This document shows positions 24,051-36,237 of a stretch of DNA of 64,000 nt, piece by piece; position 1 is the first letter of the stretch; each line of letters begins with the position of its first letter. Position numbers and translations under genes: made by a program. The notes beneath the pieces are model-generated. The model was given only the letters and a program-made list of their open reading frames with translations, was not told where the DNA came from and made no database searches. Source of the DNA: Botryllus schlosseri (taxonomy: Eukaryota); NCBI GenBank assembly GCA_051294905.1, contig CM119375.1, positions 11,966,001 to 12,030,000 of the forward strand, given 5' to 3'.

Positions 24051-27000
24051 TTAGTTATCTTCATCAATCAGTTTCAGCAGCATCTTTTCATATCCACCGC
24101 TAGTCTCTTTCTGTTAAGAGACAATATAAATTGTCAGCGGAGCTACGTTGAGGGAATCAGTTTCTAATGCGATGTGATCGTCAGCGATATTGCAGCATTA
24201 CAGGATTCTATAATAGTGGAGCTTATTGCTCATGACCTGAATCTTCTCGATCAGCAGCATGATATTCAGTCGTAACTCGCACACTGCGACCTACCTCGAT
24301 TTTCTGTGCTAGAGGAACTTGATATTTTTTAGCAAATTCTTCCTTGATATCGATCATATCGATTTCGCTTCTCGTGGTCAAAATGTAGATCAGCTGGTTG
24401 TCCTCGGTTCCCATGCCCTGTTAATTTGTTTAATTGCTGATTGTAAAAGCGTATTGGTATTGAATAGTCCTTACCTTCATCGCTTCGTACAGCTGTGTTG
24501 CGTAGTAAACAGGAGGAATGTATACAGAGAAGCGAACTAAGGTAACAAAGATAAAACAAAGATTAGAACGGAATATATTCAATCAAAGCTTATGTCGCAT
24601 ATATACGCAAAACTTGATGTGAAGTCAAAGGACATGGTACATTTGAAGATCTTTGGAGGTGGTCTACAGAGACAATTGAAAAATTATGAAGTGGGTGATA
24701 AGTTCAGTTTTGCTCGTGTTATGATGTTAGCAAAATATCCATCAATATGCATGATGCACTTATGCAGATGCGCCGAATTCAGAATTTGTCGATGTGACGT
24801 AATTGAGACGTTTAAACATGCTCGTGAACGGCACAATCCTCGGATAACAGTCCGGAAAGAAATTTTATTACAAAGCAACCGGAAACCAACACATCAATAA
24901 TGAAATATTCGCCCCTGGTCATTAAACAGGAGTCCGATTATTATTTATCATTTTTACGGCATGGGGCGAGATCCCCTATACATTTTGAGCAAAACTTCAA
25001 GAGGTAGACCACGAAATATATTCAAATAGGAAAGTGGCCACGACTACAAAAGGCTAAGCGCCACTGCTTGCTCAAAAGTCGATCCAACCGCACCAACGAA
25101 GATCACCAGAAGTAAGAGTTTAAAACGACGACAACAACATAGTCCTAATTTAGAATTCGTCTCTTTTCCCGAAGATCGTACCCAGTGTCTTGAGTCCTTT
25201 CTTCAAATTCCCCTTCGATTCTTGGTCGATCGTGTCAAGGAGATTGTCTTGCGACACCTTGGGCCAGCTCTCGTTAAAGAGGTACCACAGATGTTCAAAG
25301 CTCCGTTCCGTGAATACCTCCAGGAATTTTGGATTCGACGGATCCCAATTCTTCACCGACATCTGTGCCAGTGCCTGTCAAAGTCGAATTATACAGTAAC
25401 TGCTTACTGGTCAAGTCACTGATAGTCACTGATCTTAGACCTATATATAGTGTCCTTGTTCCATCATAGGATGCAATCACTACTCTCTAAAGTGGATAAC
25501 AATCCATTCGAATATGCCCGTTTACGAAGTATTTAATAATCGACTTCAAACTATAGTCAATATCGATGCACCATGGTCGTACCATCGCGTCCGCGTCTGC
25601 CAAGTTTGCTACCACGGTTCCGTTGTCGACCGGTCTGTTAGCTTTCAAAACCGCCAGCAGAAATTTCTTGAAATCCCCAGATGTTTCGCTAGCGATGTCG
25701 TCCTCCAGATCTCTTTGGAACTCTGAAATATTGTTACGTATATACAGAGGGGTCAGAACCGAAGTCCTACTTATTCTGAGTACTCAAGTAGGTTTTGCCT
25801 ATCTGTACTATTTACTCAAGCGGATATGTTATTACACTACTTAACAGTTTGTTACACAGGACTACTTACTTTTACACTTTGTAATTTGCAAAAGTATAAA
25901 GCAGTTTTGCATCCCTTGTATGGGTGAAATTGAAAAATTGAAATAACGACCGGGTTAAACAGCCTTGTATTACGGCCATATGTTTGAAAATTGCACCTAT
26001 ATTTGTAGTGTCATTGTTCACTTTTCCTTAGTCGTGAAGATTCGCCCTGCAATTTTGGATGTGGCCACCTCCGATAAACTGCTAAAAGTACTTGAGTACT
26101 TCTCAGATGTTCATTATCCGCTTCTAGACGTAGTAGAGTTGACATGTAGTTGAGATTGCTACTTCTATACTTGTAATTAGGATGAATTTACGGCATTAGC
26201 TTTATTCTATACTTTAGTCGCAACTCTTGACTACTTTGACCACCTAAGCATATATAATCATAATTACAATGTGTCTACGTGCATTTGCGAACTTAGTAAC
26301 ATCTGCATTATGTACCTGCCGTATAAATCACTTTGATCAACTCTATGTACCTGCCGTATAAGTCACTTTGATCAACTCTATCTCGCGACTGCTCTGCGTG
26401 CACAAGATCTCGATAAGCGTGGCTTCGTCGGTCCCCATGCCTTTGAGAGCTTTACGCAAAGCGTTGGCGTCCATCTCGCTCCTGTTCCACATCAAATGCA
26501 ATGCAGTCGATTTCACGTCTCCGCTAAGTTTATCCTTCAAGTCTTCGGTGAGTTCCTACACGATGACAGTGAGTTTTCTGCGTTGACTTACGCTCCGAAA
26601 CTGATTTCAATTCAGTGCAACAACAAATGGCCCTTGCTTACCTTGCCGAATTTGTTGATGTATGAAGCTGCGATGGCGATCCTTTGAGCCTTCGTGCGTC
26701 GCGGGAGGATGTTGATTACTGCCTCATCATCGACCACTGTTGCAGATGATATTGATATTAAACTATGATGATAATAATTAGTATAGCAGGGGTTGATCTC
26801 TATAGGAATAGTATTTACTTCTCGTGGAACGCGTTGGTTGATTGTTTCTACGATATCAAATAGGTTATAGCTAGAGCATACTAACTTCGAACGTATTTTC
26901 TGATGCGTATAACTTAACGGGTATGAGGAGTGAGGACTGTTTACAATTTACAACGCTACACCTGACATGACGAATAGACATCATTTCTCTTGCAGCTTTG

Positions 27001-27325
27001 TTTTACTCAAGTTTGTGGTCAATTAATTGCCGGTGTACATTTTTACGATTTGTTTCATGAGGTATTTTTTTTCTAAGTTTAGCGACCAATCGACCCGTGC
27101 TTGGGTCAAATTCGACTTACTTGTTCAACAGTTCAGTTAGAAGACTTAGGTGGAAATTTGATTGAGGGATCGCACAATCGGCGCACAGCCCGCAAATGCG
27201 CCACGCTCCTACTTACGGAATTTGTCCAATCCCTTGTGTATTTTTTCAGCGTCGCCTGACGGGTCGAACGGCTGCACTGGTTGAACTGTCCCGCCCTTTA
27301 CTTTCCATGTAACTGACACCACGCC
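24051..27325 (-). other. Annexin core domain of the fusion gene (8 exons, 4 repeats)
   Basis: [22 protein letters not shown]...; KGMGTDE; [16 protein letters not shown]; [17 protein letters not shown]; [12 protein letters not shown]. Confidence 0.95.
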
Positions 27326-30300
27326 CTGTCACAAAAGCATTATCGCCACAGGATCAAAATTTGTAAGAATAGCCTTCAGTAACTCGATAACACGTTTATA
27401 TAAACCCATAATACCAGTATTGGCTATCTCGGTATACTCCATATAGGGTGTTATACGTATTCCATTCATATCTAGATACCCAGCCATTGAGTTCTAGATT
27501 ATACCATATTGTAGAAAGCGGATATGCTGTGAATATACTGCAGTATACGCAGAATTTCCTGGGTAGTACTGTTAGAAAGCGACGCATAGGCTAAATTTAT
27601 TTACATCTGAGTATTTATAGAATTATACCAATGACATGCTATACGATTGTGTGGTATAATTGGTAAATTGAACGTGAGTATCGCGATATTCATTGGATGT
27701 TTTGGACATTATATTCAAGAAATATTCTAATGTATACACGAGGTTAAGATGAATTAGCAATGTCGTCATGTATATGATTCTGAACTTCAAAACCATTCAC
27801 AAATGTTCGGGATATAGGCGTCACGGCGGTGGGATATACAAGGATGATAAAGGAGGCATTAAGTGAGATGATGAATTGACCAGTGAAAAATTTTCCTCGA
27901 CTCTAATAGCTTGTGCCGTTGTGCGGTTTACCACAGGTTTGAGACTGCGTCGTTTTTGCCTCCGTTTTTTCTTTTTGCATTTCACAGCCCGCACGGCGCC
28001 CAGCGATGCAAGCGCAGAACGCGATAAGGAGCAACCATCCGGCACACTGCAGTGTTCCGGAATCAAGTCCGATATTCTGTTTGGCGGCGGCTGAAGCACA
28101 TGTTCATTCACATTTGATCTCTACTCGCTGTTCGATTGATTTTAGGTACATGTGTATGAAGTGGCAGTGGGCTGAACACCGCAGTTAAACATCAGCCAGA
28201 TTTGGGTGCGGCAATCATTTTGTTAGTTCCCGGTCTTTCAATCATTCACTGGCTAGCATGACTTTTAATGGGACTACAAATATTAGGACGATATTTATAC
28301 CTTACTTCGCTGCGCGACCCGACTTGGACTGAAACTTCGTATCTGCTGCATGCCGTCTTATTAGACGACTTTCAAGAACCCGTATTCAAACATAAACATA
28401 TAATCCCTGCTACCCACATTAATTTCAGCGGCTATATTACATGCTGTTGTAATAATTACTATTGATGGTGTTTCGACTACGTTGGTGATGATAGACTATA
28501 AGGCAGATATTCTTTGTTATAATTCCTGACCTGCTGGTGTTAGCACTGTTAGCAGCACGGCCACATTCATTCTAACCTTTTGTATAGGGTGGAAAAGAGT
28601 AGCCTACATTAAACCCCAGCACATAGGTGTAGGAATTCTGCGGTCGATAACGGCATTACTAGATCGCGAGACTCCTTGGTGATGCCGTCGTAGAACGTAC
28701 CACTACACCACCATGTCACCAAAAGCTATAAATACACCCATGATGAAGTGAGCGGCATCATGTATAGTGGCAGAGTTTGATGAACACCTTATTAGTTACT
28801 GAACAATTACTGAGATCTTCGTTTGATTTTATGACTGCGTATAAATGAATGCATGGGATCTTACGTATAAGCGATTGACTTCAGATTGACCTCCAACGCT
28901 TTTGAAAACACCCCCAATCACAAGATCATATTCGTGATACATGCTTGTATTCAATGAACAATACATCAAAATGTCACTTCTCATTCAGATATGTTTTGGT
29001 ACATTTCATACGAAGAGCGTTTGTGTGTAAAAGCAGAGACTCATATAGACGAAATAGACGAAAGGCATTAAATGCGCTACTGTACGAACTACAGAATTGA
29101 CAACTAAAGACGGACATTCTTGATTCCCCTCTTAATTTGCTCTGCACTTCAAGGACTTTCGGCTTATCACTGCGAAAATAAACGAACAAATGTTTGAGTT
29201 GGCATAAAAAGTTAACACTTAAAATATTTAAACTTGCTAGCGATAATTATCATTAAGAATTTGATCGGATTGATCTATCGATACTTTGAGATCATCAGCG
29301 ACATGATTTTGAAATTGTGGCCTGATTAACGCGCGCGGAACTAAGGTTGTGAAGGACTTTGAATGAAATGTTACTGAACCAGATTGGAAGAATGTTTCAT
29401 AGTATGTTTCCTATGCTTCTCCGTGCCTAGTTATTGTTGTTTCTAGATTAGGGTAGCGATTCAGCAGTCAGACATTGATTTGTACGATTATGGTGCTACC
29501 GAGAATAATAATAGCATATACCTCCATGTGTTTATTAGCCGTGAACACCAAGCAATGATGTTCCATTGTAATATGTCATTATAATTATTGTCCGACGCGC
29601 CCTAATATTCGACCCCAAGTATATACCCGGTTTGGAAGGTATACTGTTCGGCAGATCATAGCACTGCGTGTTAAAGTCGCGACGTCACAGCACTCGTGAT
29701 TCTGTGCTTTAGTATGAAGTGAACGTTAGTGACGGATGTGTATATGCCAGGGATGAAATATGAATTGCATTGCTACATTGCAAACTGAGGTGAACAGGCT
29801 CTCACCTTCTCTTCTGGTCCTTTGCCTTCCATCATTTCCTCGACGATGTCGCTGGCAGAGCGAGAAGACGCGCTAGAGCTGGATCGTGAGCGGCTCTTGG
29901 AGCTTGATCGCGAGCGTGAGGCGGAGCGTCCGCGGTTCGATCTGTCCGGTTTGAAGTCGGATTTCTCCACTTTAATGTCCCTGCGTATGACAAACGATAT
30001 GTCATGCGTGAGTATCGTGGATTTCCGAATGCCACAAATCCACATTTGCTGTTCATTAACTCTTTCGACGCCGAGCTAAATTTGACGATTGTCTTCAAAA
30101 CGCCGCGATTTTCACCAAATAACCCCAATTTCAACCGATCGTAACTTCGTCGCTACCTTAGCTACCGAGACGTACCTACGTCCGTATTGTAGCCGCGAAC
30201 GATATCTATCTAATGATGCGTAACGTGCCTTGATTGATCCTGTCGTGTTGCTAGGACAGGCTTCGGTACGAACTGAAGTTTGGCTGATTTCAGGCGCGCT

Positions 30301-33300
30301 GCTGCCAAGGTATGGATTTTGTTAGTGTTTCTATGGTACTTATAGATTAGCTATGACGTTGTAAATTTCACAGAATATTCTTATTATATTATATATTGAT
30401 AATATATTATCCTTAAATCGTTAATTCCTTTTCAATGGCAACGCGGAGGTTCAGAACCGTCGTGAAATACTGCTGCCGACATGATCTTCGGCCGTCGATG
30501 CTTCAAGATTATCATTGTGACGTCAAATCCACAATAATGGCTCGAAAATTTGACTTTTGCTAGTACCGGTACTCAAGTTTGTTTTTCAGGCGCAGTAACA
30601 TACCGACGGAGCCCATTTGTGTACGATTACAAGCAACGATCTGGACAAAAACATCATTACTTGTCTCCGTTGAGTCCTCGTCATCTCCCGACGCAATTTT
30701 ACGTTTGAAAAACTTGAATAAATACGTATATATTGGTGTGAAGTCTGTGTTGTCGCAGTACATGTACTGACTTGGTGGCTTTAGTAGATCCGTATATTAA
30801 CTTAACGCGCGATATGTCGCTAAAGATTGGTGATAATGATGTAAAATGTCTTTAGGTATTGACATCTGTTGAAAATCATTACCGTCGTGGAAATATATAT
30901 CGAATAAAGTTACTATTCCGTACAGGTAATCCAGCGAAATTGCTTCTTAGTAGCAAGTCTTGAATTTCGAATTCATTACCGCACAATGCCCCGACTGCCA
31001 TGGACGCAAAACGGCATGTCAGATTTTCGAGACAAAAATACGCTCTCTCGATTTAGCGAACATATGGGGATACGCGGCGTTTTGAGACAATCTCTAGCGA
31101 ACATATGGGGATACGCGGCGTCGAAAGAGTTAAGATGTCGTTTTATTGAAATGGAACAACTGAAATACATCGAATACCCATAACGAATAGGACCCGCAAA
31201 CACGAATCGGCTGTGATTTACGATCCTGCCACATAAATGTCATTCCAACCCTACTAATCATAGATCACCCGTCAGACATCGTGGAATTAGCAAAACCAAA
31301 TGTGGAGTAGCCTATTACTGAAGTTCGTTTTCCCAATATAGTTCCACATCTACTTGACTGTTTTAAAGGCGTAACATACAGACTCCTTGCACTTTTCATT
31401 CTGTGAAATTGAATGTAGTTTAAGGTTATGCATACATCACCTTTATGAGTGAAACTGTCATAAAAAATGAGGATATACAGCTCCTGAGTCAAGGTAACGG
31501 AATTTATTATCTTATATTGAACCTATTTGTAGTGTCAACAATCATTTCGAAGTATAGTCACATCCGATTATTAACTGCTAAATGTAAGCGACACCTCGAC
31601 CAATTCTACTTTTAACACCAAGTACTTGAGCACTTTTCATACCTTTATTTTCGTCTTCCAACTAATGTAGCCTAAATAGTTTTGACATATCTTGGAATTC
31701 GCTACTTCGATTTTTAGATGAATACTAACGCTGACTACTTTGATAGGCACTGAGCAGAACATACCTGGACTCTTCTCCTTGCAAGAGCTTGTGGTAAATA
31801 GCGATTTCCTGGTCCAAACTGAGTTTCAAGTTGTTGAGATCCTGGTATTCCTTCAGATATTTCGCAAGGTCCTAAGACAAAGCAGTATATTGTTACAAGT
31901 CCACGCTCACTCGCTGGATAGAATCTTACCAATTTCGCGTCGTCGAGTTCTTTGCTTAGTTCGTGAATCTCCTTATCCGCAGATGCATTCTGTTTCGCGA
32001 GTCTGTCTTCCAAATCTTCAATTTGCTTCTCCAGGTTGTCGGTCTGTAGCACGAATGTTATTGGGGTTCATAAGTAGTAAACTAAGGAGTGCCAATGAGG
32101 ATTATGACACCAGATGAAATGCAGCATTGCGTATAAACCCTCTTCTGTACGAAGAGTTGGGTCAATTTATATGCTCATAATATCAAAGATGGGTTGTAGG
32201 ATTCATAAGCGCTTCTGCATGACAAGAATACGGGTCGAATTGCCACTGTTTCTCCTATGTTCTCTGCAATGAAGTTTTGTGTTCTATATTTTAAGACGAC
32301 TTGTAGATGTGGATGTTTGATGGAGATATGTCGATGTGGAAATATTATTTTGTATTTCATTTCCATATCCAGAAGTCCAGTAATACTTTACCTTGCCACG
32401 GAGTGCTTCCAGCTCCATCTCCAACTGATGAATGGTCTTTCTTTGGTCGGTGTTTTCTTGCTTGAGCCCACGGTTATCTTCCTGTGTCGCTTTAAGTTGC
32501 CTGTTCATGTTTTCAAGCTATAGGAAATAAATATAAGACAAGATAAGACGTGATGCCAAACGACAATATATCCCCTTGTGAACGCATGGTGCGTAAAATT
32601 AGGCATACGGTTTTGGAAGTACTCAGATGTCACTTTAGTGTTTGCGGCTATACGCTATAAGCAATAGGATATACGAAAGCGCCTAATAAGGAAATGATGA
32701 CGCACAATGCCAAGTCGTAAAAGAGTATGCGGTCGTGCCTTTTCCTTGAATTGCGACGTAATAGCTGGAACGTGACCTTTTGCGCGCAGATCTAATATTA
32801 GACCGGCAAAGCCGGCGAATATCAAACCGCATCGCCGGACATGCCAATAAATGTGTATTTCGCTAACAGTCTTATGTTATCATTGTAAATACCAAACCTC
32901 GTACAGAATAATGTAAATTTACTGCGGCGAACATTCCGTGAATGAAGCAAATGACATTTAAGGAACACTTTTAGCCTATGCTACATATGTAAAACACATA
33001 GATGCGCTTGTGGATATAGTCTTAATGGGTCCATTGAAAATTTCAATGGCAAACCAAGTTATTTACGGCGGGCGAGCATAAAGAATTGCTTGACCAAACA
33101 AACCTTCTCCTTGTAAAAAGCGTCAAGCGACTCCATGTTCTTCGTGTTGAACGCCTCGTATTGCTGCCTCACGCTCTGGATGGCGTCAGTCAGATCAGAG
33201 GTAACCAGGGAAGATGGTTCGTTCTCCAACATAATCGCTGAGGCCGGTTGGATTTGGCCGCGGAGATTCTCCAGTTCCTGCAAAGAATCGGTCATAAGGT

Positions 33301-35786
33301 CTGGGAAAAATGTCGATGACCGCACAGCAATCAGCATAGAGCGATCTCATTAACTGATTCATTAGTTGATACAAGTTAATACCGACCAAGTGGTCCATGA
33401 CTATTGACTATTGACTATCATGGTATCTGTTATTAACTTCGTCATTCGTAGTGTAACGTATACGGTAGAACAAGAACTATTGTAAGGAAACATACCACAG
33501 CGTGTGCTTGTCTCTCGAGTTGCAAAGTCTCTTGGAGATTCTCCAGCTTGCTCTCCAAGCTGACTCTTTCAATAGTTGCGTCATCGACATCCTTTGGAAG
33601 GAAAGCAAGCGTTTTAAAAATGTTTCTGTGTCGACATAATTTGTTCCTGTTAAGGGTAGATTTTGCGCCGCTCTGAGACAAGGCGAACATGACATTCTGT
33701 ACGAGCGACAGTTCCTAATGTGTTAATTACAGTCCATTATGATTATACGCGAGCGATAGGTGCAACAAGACACAGGAACATGAGATATGGGTTGCAGGTA
33801 AAAAGAATTTAACCACGTGCCTTGCGAAGGTCTTTAACTTCTTTTTCGAGAGCCTTTCTTTCTTCTTGCTCCTGTTCCAATCTGAAAGAGATGTGCCGTC
33901 GTTTATTATCATTACACGTACATTAGATAGGCTATGTATACAATAGGTGAATGTTATAGGTTGCAGAGGGATCTCTCCTCGCCTTGCTAAATAACAGGAT
34001 ACACCCTGAGCCGGCATTACAGGGCTCATTTATCATGACTGCGATAGACGTATAATTTACTCGGCGTATACGTGACAGCGCGTCGGCGAGGACGGACACG
34101 CCCGGAAAACACACACTACCATTCAAAGATAAATAATATCTTCACATGCCTGAACTAGGAAGGATAATAAGGTGACTTTCTAAATATTATTTCGGCAATC
34201 CACGTTAACATAAAGCCTTTATAAAGTTGCGCGGTCGACGAGTTCTGCGACGCAGCTAAGTCACAACGCGCTGCTGATATGAATGCGAGCACAGGCTATT
34301 AACCTAACGCATCTGACCTAAGAAAGTCGTGTACTATATAAATGCATTACTTTTCTTCGGTATCTTCCAAGTCATATTTCAAGTTGTCTTTTTCGATCTC
34401 CAATCTCTGGTTTTCAACGGTGAGGTCTTCCACTTTGGCACGAAGTTTCTGGGGAACAAATTGTATATGATGCCACGGTTCAACGAAGATCCACGCCGTT
34501 AGCATTACAAGTGTGAGAACGTGCTGAAGTAATTTGCGATCATTGACGGGAGAAAAGGTTTGTTTTGACTTTGACGCACTCATAATATAGGGTCCTTTAA
34601 ACAAATCAAGCTATTTCCATGAACGGTGTTAAACGTTCTGTATATGATGGGCTTCCGTAGAATTTTAGAGAGGGCTCGTGATTGAGATAATATACTCTGA
34701 TTGCTACAATATAATTTGAAATTGTTGATGAGGTTTCTGAATCTCACAAAAAGAGTAGGACAAATTAAATTCGTAGCCGCACGAGTACACAGCGGATTTT
34801 TACGCAACAATGCGCACAGTGTAGTTCACGCAGCTCCACCGTAGATATTATACGAGGACCCTATCTATTCTATATAGCTGCGTACCGTTAATTCATCTTC
34901 GTAAAGTTCTGCGATGTCCTTCTCGGGGCCCTTTTCGGTCTTACGGAGAGCGGCGTTTTCGGCTTTCAGAATTCTGTTGGCCTCGATCAAGTCGTGAACT
35001 TTGTCGATGTAATTGACCAAGCGGTTGTTACATTTCTTCATCTTCTCCTTTTCCGCTTCTTTGTTCTTTCGCATTTCTCTGTGGGTGATGGGTGAAGCTG
35101 AGTGATAATTATGCGCGCGAACAATATACGGTTTCGTAATCAAAATTTGGAAGGTTTCCCTTTGTACACGATTGATTCCTATAGACGTTCGCTTTTGAGA
35201 TGTCTATCTGCTAATTAGTTCTTACCAGTGCTTAAAGTACCAGTGACGTAATAAGTTGATATTGAACACATTTACATGTTTATGGGCACTGTACCTGTTG
35301 AGCCATTCCTTCATTCAGACTGAAGTATTAAGGCGTTAAGTCTATCATAAAATATAAGCACCACATTATAAATGTAAGTACGTTTCGTGCAATCTTGGAA
35401 TAACTAATATAGGGTTTCGTTTAAAGTGGAAATGCATTTAATAGGCAGATGTTTAAAATGTTTTTTCTTGTTGTTGTTTTTGTATGTTCGTTAACCATCA
35501 CCATTTCATCACCTATATATGAAATTTACTATCACAATTTCCGGTTTGTTAAGTTATATGCACATCCACATACACGACAGGTCTGTTTCAGCAAACGATT
35601 TGATTCAAATACAACCCTACTTATATTCAAATTTTCCAAGTTTTACCTGCGAATAACACAGTAATTCTGGTCAACAATTTAGGTATCTATTCTATACACT
35701 TACGGAGTGTTTGCGACTGACATCGAATACGACGATTGCTTCCCATAGCTTCGTCTGTAAGCTGAAGTTCTTGACTTTGTAGACAT
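24051..35786 (-). CDS. IF-F: Intermediate filament-annexin fusion protein (IF-F-like), 18 exons, 737 aa
   Basis: Exons 35786-35704, 35078-34886, 34448-34351, 33881-33821, 33591-33496, 33277-33104, 32517-32392, 32043-31930, 31871-31765, 29980-29806, 27325-27217, 26736-26642, 26555-26351, 25722-25583, 25374-25182, 24536-24475, 24417-24295, 24110-24051 total 2214 nt in one open frame. The protein has a type-III-like head ([15 protein letters not shown]), coil 1a ([11 protein letters not shown]), rod end ([15 protein letters not shown]), an RS-rich linker, then four annexin repeats ([54 protein letters not shown]). The IF part has no stop, the annexin part has no ATG, and the phase-0 junction is in frame. 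Confidence 0.88.
29806..35786 (-). other. Cytoplasmic IF domain of the fusion gene (head, short-coil-1b rod, RS tail)
   Basis: The rod reads [24 protein letters not shown] with no 42-residue coil-1b insertion and no lamin tail, which is the chordate pattern. Confidence 0.95.
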
Positions 35787-36237
35787 GTTGGCTGCAAAAA
35801 ATTTTGGTCAATGAAATATTACTGAAATTTATCGAACTGCAGGGTCCAATCTGCGGAATAGAGCTAGAATATAATTTGCCGCGCCATAACCCTGTATATT
35901 CTACACTCTACTGCAATGAATCATTCCGGCCCAATAAGTTTGATTCCAGATAAACTCGATGGCTCAAGTCTGTGAACGACACTAATCAATGCAATGGACC
36001 GAGGGGGTGTATGACATCACAATTCGCAAAGCAAGACCGTCACATTCGATCGTTAAAACGTCTGGGAGCCAGCGATATAATACAAGCGATTGGAAAATAT
36101 GAAGTTATAAACCTCTTTACTCCCACCCGTAGGGCTGCACAGTGCACATGCACACCAATATGCATCACTGTAGCGCACGGACGAGATGAGATAAGTTGAC
36201 TCATCTCTGCTGTACAGCGCACATTGCTCATTGCTAT

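Follow-up and report, generated by a model that had tools for sequence, protein, structure and literature searches.

The occurrence, on one strand and in one reading frame, of exons encoding an intermediate filament (IF) protein followed by exons encoding an annexin raises the question of whether the two belong to a single gene and, if so, what that gene produces. The locus lies at 35786 to 24051, on the minus strand, of a 64,000-nucleotide (nt) stretch of the Botryllus schlosseri genome (assembly GCA_051294905.1, contig CM119375.1, positions 11,966,001 to 12,030,000 of the forward strand), hereafter called the window and numbered from its first letter. We conclude with high confidence that this is one gene in which a choice made at the donor of exon 10 (29806) gives two mRNAs, the predominant one encoding an IF protein without annexin.

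The gene model was rebuilt from the stop-free stretches of the minus strand and a table of splice sites. It comprises 18 exons (Table 1) that join into a single frame of 2211 nt, corresponding to 736 residues and a TAA stop; the exon number and single frame of a preliminary description of this DNA were retained, and its length of 737 residues was corrected, as it counted the stop codon. The encoded parts are, in order, a short head, an IF rod, a 58-residue Ser/Arg-rich tail and a four-repeat annexin, with Pfam matches to Filament on exons 2, 6 and 9 (start, middle and end of the profile) and to Annexin on exons 13, 14, 15 and 17. The ATG at 35786 is preceded by an in-frame stop seven codons upstream. 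Joints without RNA support rest on the gap-free, end-to-end alignment to a Styela clava protein presented below. The joint between the two halves was seen on the minus strand as first described: exon 10 ends in ...GGACCAGAAGAGAAG/gtgaga (slashes mark exon boundaries; last codons GPEEK, last exon base 29806, phase 0, no stop on the IF side) and exon 11 begins at gtgacag/GGCGTGGTGTCAGTTACATGGAAA (over a longer stretch, gtgacag/GGCGTGGTG; first exon base 27325, phase 0, no ATG). An in-frame TGA stands two codons upstream of exon 11, and the first in-frame Met downstream of the exon 11 start is found at the end of annexin repeat 1. An annexin start in frame upstream of exon 11 is ruled out by this TGA, also for the longer transcript variant of RNA run X3 described below.

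Sixteen of the introns are GT-AG and one is assigned as GC-AG (donor after 33821). The latter is inferred from homology only, the GC donor having been chosen because no other gives the ...LRK/DVDD... join found in all orthologs; the minus strand reads AAG/gcacgt there (window 33815-33821), and at this site the donor of the Styela ortholog is GT. At the gene's opposite end, an AG acceptor (tttgcag/CCAAC; window 35787-35798, minus strand) precedes the ATG by five bases; sites of this kind are where a tunicate spliced leader would be trans-spliced on, or where an intron of the 5' untranslated region would end.

RNA was placed on 26200-32100 from three contig sets (runs X1, X2 and X3) and one run of raw reads (X23); the depth given for a contig is a flat mean, and minor paths are lost from contigs. 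The joints of exon 8 to exon 9 and of exon 9 to exon 10 are present in all four runs, and those of exon 11 to exon 12 and exon 12 to exon 13 in the three contig runs. A check for RNA across the junction of the two halves found the joint from 29806 to 27325 (2480 nt skipped, GT..AG on the minus strand) in contigs of run X1 (depth 189) and run X2 (depth 169), so that the in-frame fusion is real in RNA. In both runs the annexin contig crosses this joint 30-31 nt into exon 10 and then stops, exon 10 being its sole upstream link; such a stop is assembly-graph behaviour at a point where isoforms merge.

The preliminary description had envisaged a single IF-annexin product. The fusion exists, but it is the minor isoform, and the main product, which that description missed, is an IF-only protein. 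The principal joint leads from 29806 to 29169 (636 nt skipped; 253 reads in run X23, contig depth 768 in run X1) and enters an alternative terminal exon, 10b, whose first codon is a stop; these transcripts encode a 408-residue IF-only protein that ends exactly at GPEEK. Judged by depth, the fusion makes up ~12-20% of transcripts in runs X1 and X2 (annexin:IF depth ~0.13) and a few per cent at most in run X23; compared by contig depth, the IF-only and fusion forms stand at ~4:1 in two of the contig runs. The 3' end of exon 10b, near 28950, is an estimate from the fall in depth only, because on reading the sequence no canonical AATAAA was found near it.

The join is not peculiar to this genome. 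The homologue search was started with exon 13, which ranked multi-repeat annexins at the top and also found the 733-residue Ciona intestinalis 'intermediate filament IF-Fb' (CAE01321.1, Q70KQ6), matched over residues 477-542, the place of exon 13 in our model. IF-Fb was then used as query, and its tail-to-annexin region retrieved proteins carrying both Filament and Annexin from Ciona (isoforms X1 and X3), Clavelina lepadiformis (X1 and X2) and Styela clava (LOC120330013), as well as from nine transcript assemblies. Residues 1-736 of the window model are 68.7% identical to residues 1-748 of the Styela clava protein, end to end, and identity to Ciona IF-Fb (56%) and Clavelina X2 (57%) extends nearly end to end as well. 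Ciona, Clavelina, Styela and nine further assemblies all keep the join with its phase and neighbouring peptide; at the Styela locus the IF exon ends KEEK/gtgaat and the annexin exon starts ttcag/GGAGTCGTG, with boundary and phase-0/phase-0 junction as in the window.

The stop-first exon has a counterpart as well. A motif scan of the Styela clava intron located, ~620 nt from the donor, ttatttttggcag/TGAGAACGCAAAAACGTCC, which corresponds to ttattttcgcag/TGATAAGCCGAAAGTCC at 636 nt in the window, although blastn of the large window intron against the Styela intron gave no sequence conservation. In the IF-only mRNA of a Styela-like species, ...EEK is directly followed by TGAGAACC. The stop-first exon is therefore conserved and not a quirk of the window genome. 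The IF-only proteins of Ciona savignyi and of eight assemblies end at or soon after the boundary, all but one within 12 residues, which argues that the two-isoform design is general in the tunicate IF-F group. When the C. savignyi IF-only protein was used as query, no C. intestinalis protein named IF-Fa was among the matches listed; from the name IF-Fb, we infer that Ciona 'IF-Fa' is the IF-only form.

The window gene has the same in-frame boundary as the IF-F orthologous group, end-to-end similarity to its members and both IF-only and IF-annexin products. On sequence comparison it is the ortholog of Ciona IF-F, and its architecture is known in tunicates, not new. An annexin fusion named IF-F was reportedly described in Ciona by Karabinos, Zimek and Weber in 2004. 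The preliminary description had referred to this work and called the architecture tunicate-specific. It was right in substance: the IF-Fb ortholog was found, the title of the paper (Gene 326:123) stands in reference lists, and all named relatives found (Ciona, Clavelina, Styela) are tunicates.

The 29806 donor is also joined, in trace amounts only (depth 4), to a further acceptor at 28090. From this acceptor the minus strand of 27765-28090 stays in frame for ~50 codons, among them a polybasic run, as far as a potential GT donor; the single contig with this acceptor has no downstream splice. Ahead of the annexin, this stretch would form an in-frame cassette; the corresponding position in Ciona X1 and Clavelina X1 is occupied by an unrelated, acidic one.

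The IF half was compared with vertebrate IF types. Heads of type III proteins carry a nonapeptide of the SSYRR-FG type. The head of the window protein, 36 residues long, has SAYRRSYG at residues 8-15, a motif kept as SAYR(K/R)S-G in Ciona, Clavelina and Styela. The rod spans ~313 residues in the model, with an LNDR-type motif at its start and a YRKLLEGEE-type motif at its end. Residues 1-402 of the model align to residues 1-399 of an IF-only relative (P0166), whose residues 21-347 in turn align to vimentin 92-412 (4e-57), without the 42-residue insert; in coil 1B of this relative, vimentin and GFAP fragments score above keratin fragments. The rod is thus of the short kind, ~310 residues without the coil 1B insert of lamins and protostome IFs. 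The Ser/Arg-rich tail ends with the conserved motif SDIVEEM, gave no Pfam match of note, lies outside the vimentin alignment and has no type III tail consensus that we could see. The term 'type-III-like' proposed beforehand suits the head motif and the rod similarity and not the tail, so that 'type III-like', rather than type III, is a fair name for what the IF half appears to be.

The annexin half proved complete, as had been claimed. Besides the Pfam matches, the annexin half of the ortholog aligns over 316-320 residues, the full core, to annexins V, IV and II (~1e-66 to 1e-69; annexin V, 2e-69), and an AlphaFold (AF2) model of Styela clava residues 400-748 (madc2a8cd8273) has an ordinary four-repeat helical core, with a predicted local distance difference test score (pLDDT) of 82.9. 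As a type II Ca2+ site we counted a GxGT loop with an acidic residue ~38 positions further on. In repeat 1 the window protein has lost it, with KFLV for GxGT and Lys for the acidic residue; 10 of 11 relatives have GxGT there, and one has GLGR. The GxGT and Glu of repeat 2 are kept here, and the site is kept in all orthologs. Repeat 3 has no site in the window protein (VKNW.PSN.) or in any ortholog. The site of repeat 4 is kept here and in Styela and Ciona and lost in several lineages. The canonical sites of the window protein, as recognised by these motifs, are limited to repeats 2 and 4. The segment that follows the join, GV(I/V)SV(S/T)WKVKGG, is among the best-conserved parts (57-78% conserved vs 21-55% for the tail). 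In the Styela model its VSV strand (residues 22-24) is predicted to pair with the invariant GTV of the linker between repeats 2 and 3 (193-195), with a pLDDT of ~60, and this pairing might determine how the annexin is oriented with respect to the filament tail.

Most transcripts pass from 29806 to the stop-first exon at 29169 and encode the 408-residue IF protein; a minority skip exon 10b for exon 11 (27325), adding eight exons and a 328-residue annexin, and encode the 736-residue IF-annexin. The two forms have a common head, rod and Ser/Arg-rich tail. We propose the following mechanism. Because these assembly-competent parts are identical, the two forms should co-polymerise into filaments that would carry annexin cores on a fraction of their tails. 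Such bulky tails would be tolerated on the filament surface if borne by a minority of subunits, in agreement with the observed ratio. In annexins the N-terminus is on the concave face and the Ca2+- and lipid-binding face is convex. Since the fusion enters the annexin at its N-terminus, the convex membrane-binding face would stay free. With the sites of repeats 2 and 4, a rise in Ca2+ could tie the filaments to membranes of acidic phospholipids without a plakin-type linker, and the use or skipping of the stop-first exon would set the isoform ratio and, with it, the number of anchors per filament.

Ca2+-dependent membrane anchoring as the function of the annexin tail is put forward tentatively, its chances being, in our estimate, somewhat short of even. 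It is weakened by the site map, as lipid binding in response to Ca2+ may be feeble because the sites of repeat 1 (in this species) and repeat 3 (in all orthologs) are lost. The fusion protein may also be made and its annexin tail act without Ca2+, by binding proteins, bundling filaments or binding lipid constitutively, an explanation that we consider unlikely, yet deserving of attention. In its favour, the repeat 2 site is the only canonical one present in every ortholog: repeat 3 never has one, the window protein has lost that of repeat 1, and several lineages have lost that of repeat 4. The conserved GV(I/V)SV(S/T)WKVKGG segment and GTVV linker, whose pairing is predicted at modest confidence, are likewise not lipid-binding features. 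However, repeats 2 and 4 of the window protein hold both GxGT and the acidic residue ~38 positions on, its core is otherwise that of a standard annexin, and membrane binding persists in annexins whose active sites number fewer than four.

Several RNA observations weigh against the reading of one gene with a fusion mRNA and an IF-only mRNA. The fusion joint is supported by contigs whose short side measures 30-31 nt, from two runs of a single study, and among the raw reads of run X23 no fusion-joint reads rose above the listing threshold, with a depth of 1-4 on the annexin exons vs ~290 on exon 10. Run X3 differs: its annexin contig, instead of connecting to exon 10, carries on into the 134 nt that precede exon 11 (up to 27459), and its IF contig passes the 29806 donor unspliced and continues into the intron as far as 29200, a read-through that would append 10 residues before a stop. 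No depth is reported on the stop-first exon in this run, and annexin and IF depths are 62 vs 71 (ratio ~0.9). Read literally, run X3 contains an IF form with a short read-through extension and a transcript of the annexin exons that starts within the intron. From this pattern, the fusion is not the sole RNA form of the annexin exons. A transcript begun in the intron could not encode the full annexin, because of the TGA before exon 11 and the position of the next Met.

These data might be read as three outputs, namely IF-only, IF-annexin and, in some tissues, an annexin-containing transcript from an internal start in the 2.5-kb intron. In favour of this are the unjoined run X3 contig, the annexin:IF depth of ~0.9 set against ~0.13 in runs X1 and X2, and an annexin-only mRNA known in another species; we nevertheless find it improbable, as in this species such a transcript would enter exon 11 without an open frame, the piece ahead of that exon could be pre-mRNA of low abundance given that depth is a flat mean, and the pattern comes from one run, in contigs only. 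We give equally little credence to the regulated form of this proposal, a three-way switch, as opposed to a fixed fusion, in which inclusion or skipping of the stop-first exon would set the annexin-bearing share from ~1% to 20% or more according to tissue, and tissues of the run X3 type would make the donor read-through IF and the internal-start annexin transcript; if true, the locus would stand, in a living species, midway between two adjacent genes and a fused one. That the locus consists of two neighbouring genes, an IF gene ending in exon 10b and a separate annexin gene, occasionally bridged by functionless read-through (conjoined-gene) splicing from 29806 to 27325, is very hard to credit, for although the IF-only form dominates wherever it can be measured, the run X3 annexin exons are unlinked to exon 10 at a depth like that of the IF exons, and a planktonic species has annexin-only mRNAs with their own start codon (P0095, P0169), exon 11 has no ATG, a TGA two codons upstream and its next in-frame Met at the end of repeat 1, the join with its phase and flanking peptide is conserved in Ciona, Clavelina, Styela and nine assemblies, and in runs X1 and X2 the annexin contig links upstream to exon 10 only. 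Our preferred reading is thus still one gene with a choice between two mRNAs at the exon 10 donor.

Table 1. Exons of the Botryllus schlosseri IF-annexin gene, in window positions, with what they encode and the evidence for them
Feature	Positions	Strand	Content and evidence
Exon 1	35704..35786	-	ATG, head with SAYRRSYG; phase 2 end; aligned to Styela clava N-terminus
Exon 2	34886..35078	-	Rod start, coil 1; Pfam Filament positions 2-56, E 5.6e-10
Exon 3	34351..34448	-	Coil 1B; homology
Exon 4	33821..33881	-	Coil 1B; putative GC donor AAG/gcacgt; homology
Exon 5	33499..33591	-	Coil 1B; model and homology
Exon 6	33104..33277	-	Linker L12 and coil 2 start; Pfam Filament positions 143-197
Exon 7	32392..32517	-	Coil 2; model and homology
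Exon 8	31930..32043	-	Coil 2; RNA joint to exon 9 in all four runs
Exon 9	31765..31871	-	Rod end; Pfam Filament positions 278-312, E 1.2e-9; joint 31765 to 29980 in 4/4 runs
Exon 10	29806..29980	-	Ser/Arg-rich tail, SDIVEEM; ends GPEEK, phase 0, no stop; donor is the isoform branch point
Exon 10b, alternative terminal	28950..29169	-	Acceptor ttattttcgcag; TGA as first codon, then TAA; gives the 408-residue IF-only isoform
Exon 11	27217..27325	-	Conserved annexin N-terminal segment, no ATG; joint 27217 to 26736 in runs X1, X2, X3
Exon 12	26642..26736	-	Annexin repeat 1; Ca2+ loop degenerate, KFLV instead of GxGT
Exon 13	26351..26555	-	Repeat 1 end and repeat 2 start (KGMGTDE); Pfam Annexin E 1e-14; RNA joint
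Exon 14	25583..25722	-	Repeat 2 end and repeat 2-3 linker (DNGTVVAN); Pfam Annexin
Exon 15	25182..25374	-	Repeat 3, GxGT absent in every ortholog; Pfam Annexin E 3e-5
Exon 16	24475..24536	-	Repeat 4 start; model and homology
Exon 17	24295..24417	-	Repeat 4 (KGMGTED); Pfam Annexin E 9e-12
Exon 18	24051..24110	-	Repeat 4 end (KETSGGY...); TAA stop 24053-24051
Minor alternative acceptor from 29806 donor	27765..28090	-	Joint 29806 to 28090, one run X1 contig, depth 4

The intron that separates exons 9 and 10 also contains, at 30263-31133, a transcript of the opposite (plus) strand that is itself spliced. Its GT..AG joints lead from 30307 to 30588/30589 (26+7 reads) and from 30305 to 30574 (14 reads), and in runs X1 and X2 its contig depth is 50-98. 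Additional exons are suggested by loose ends at 30056, 30309 and 31133. A search of 30263-31133 for open reading frames gave none longer than 91 codons and no obvious coding frame; perhaps the transcript belongs to a nested gene, or it is an antisense RNA that does not code for protein. Outside this genome, two planktonic metatranscriptome contigs (L003 and L004, 1-260) represent polyadenylated mRNAs that are annexin-only and belong to the same subfamily of annexins (GVISLEWEIKGG, VANWSPSN). Each has an ATG of its own, and the 64 residues of the N-terminal part do not resemble an IF protein. Both begin with ATAAG..., possibly the last bases of a tunicate spliced leader.

The usual attachment of intermediate filaments to membranes is by way of linker proteins distinct from the filament. 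A filament subunit with what its sequence suggests to be a built-in lipid-binding domain would be a simple natural alternative to such linkers, and it seems to occur in tunicates only, the group closest to vertebrates. The IF-annexin architecture itself has been known since 2004, and like proteins are automatically annotated in Styela and Clavelina. To this, the present analysis contributes proof of both joints in the RNA of another species, the ratio of the isoforms, the conservation of the stop-first exon and a map of kept and lost Ca2+ sites; relative to the 2004 description, the fusion is now seen to be conserved across three ascidian orders and to be the minor of two isoforms. The isoform ratio, the sites of repeats 2 and 4 and the conserved segment beside the join provide testable handles. 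A full-text search of the open literature for IF-Fa, IF-Fb or IF-F with Ciona returned nothing relevant, and no open paper on IF-F function; the function, which the preliminary description called little studied, has apparently not been followed up there.

Among known systems, the nearest are the tunicate relatives. Ciona IF-Fb has the same head, short-type rod, Ser-rich tail with (S/T)(D/E)IVEEM, GV(I/V)SV(S/T)WKVKGG segment, four-repeat annexin and place of the join. The window gene differs from Ciona IF-F in that it groups with Styela (a stolidobranch) and has lost the repeat 1 Ca2+ site. The linker of Ciona isoform X1 (NCBI) includes an acidic cassette of 45 residues, and nothing comparable was seen in the window gene; the IF-only form of Ciona savignyi ends one residue past the join, whereas that of the window ends exactly at it. 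The closest relative found, Styela clava LOC120330013 (748 residues, annotated as 'uncharacterized protein'), has the same boundary, KEEK/gt ... ag/GVVSVTWK; its tail is longer and split over two exons, its exon 4 donor is GT and its repeat 1 retains GRGT.

With the type III proteins vimentin and desmin, the window protein shares the short chordate rod without the lamin insert and the SAYRRSYG head, vimentin being its best match among solved chains, and it differs from them in its short Ser/Arg-rich tail. We know of no vertebrate IF that carries an annexin. On the annexin side, the closest parallels are annexins A7 and A11, in which long N-terminal extensions likewise place a foreign part ahead of an intact four-repeat core; the pre-core GGTV(R/Q)P...DAE of the window protein is a typical pattern, and engineered PDZ-annexin A2 chimeras among the PDB matches indicate that N-terminal annexin fusions fold. 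Unlike in A7 and A11, the 'extension' here is a whole filament-forming protein, and the repeat 3 Ca2+ loop is absent throughout the IF-F family.

For the choice between two ends, the LMNA gene offers an analogy, since this one IF gene gives lamin A and lamin C, with two tails, by alternative 3' exons. The window gene resembles it in joining one IF body to alternative C-terminal ends through the choice of 3' exon; its protein differs from lamins in having no lamin insert, and no nuclear localization signal or CaaX motif was seen in it. Finally, the usual connectors between IFs and membranes are plakins such as plectin and desmoplakin. By analogy, the IF-annexin would do the same job as these linkers, with the anchor built into the filament subunit instead of being supplied by a separate protein.

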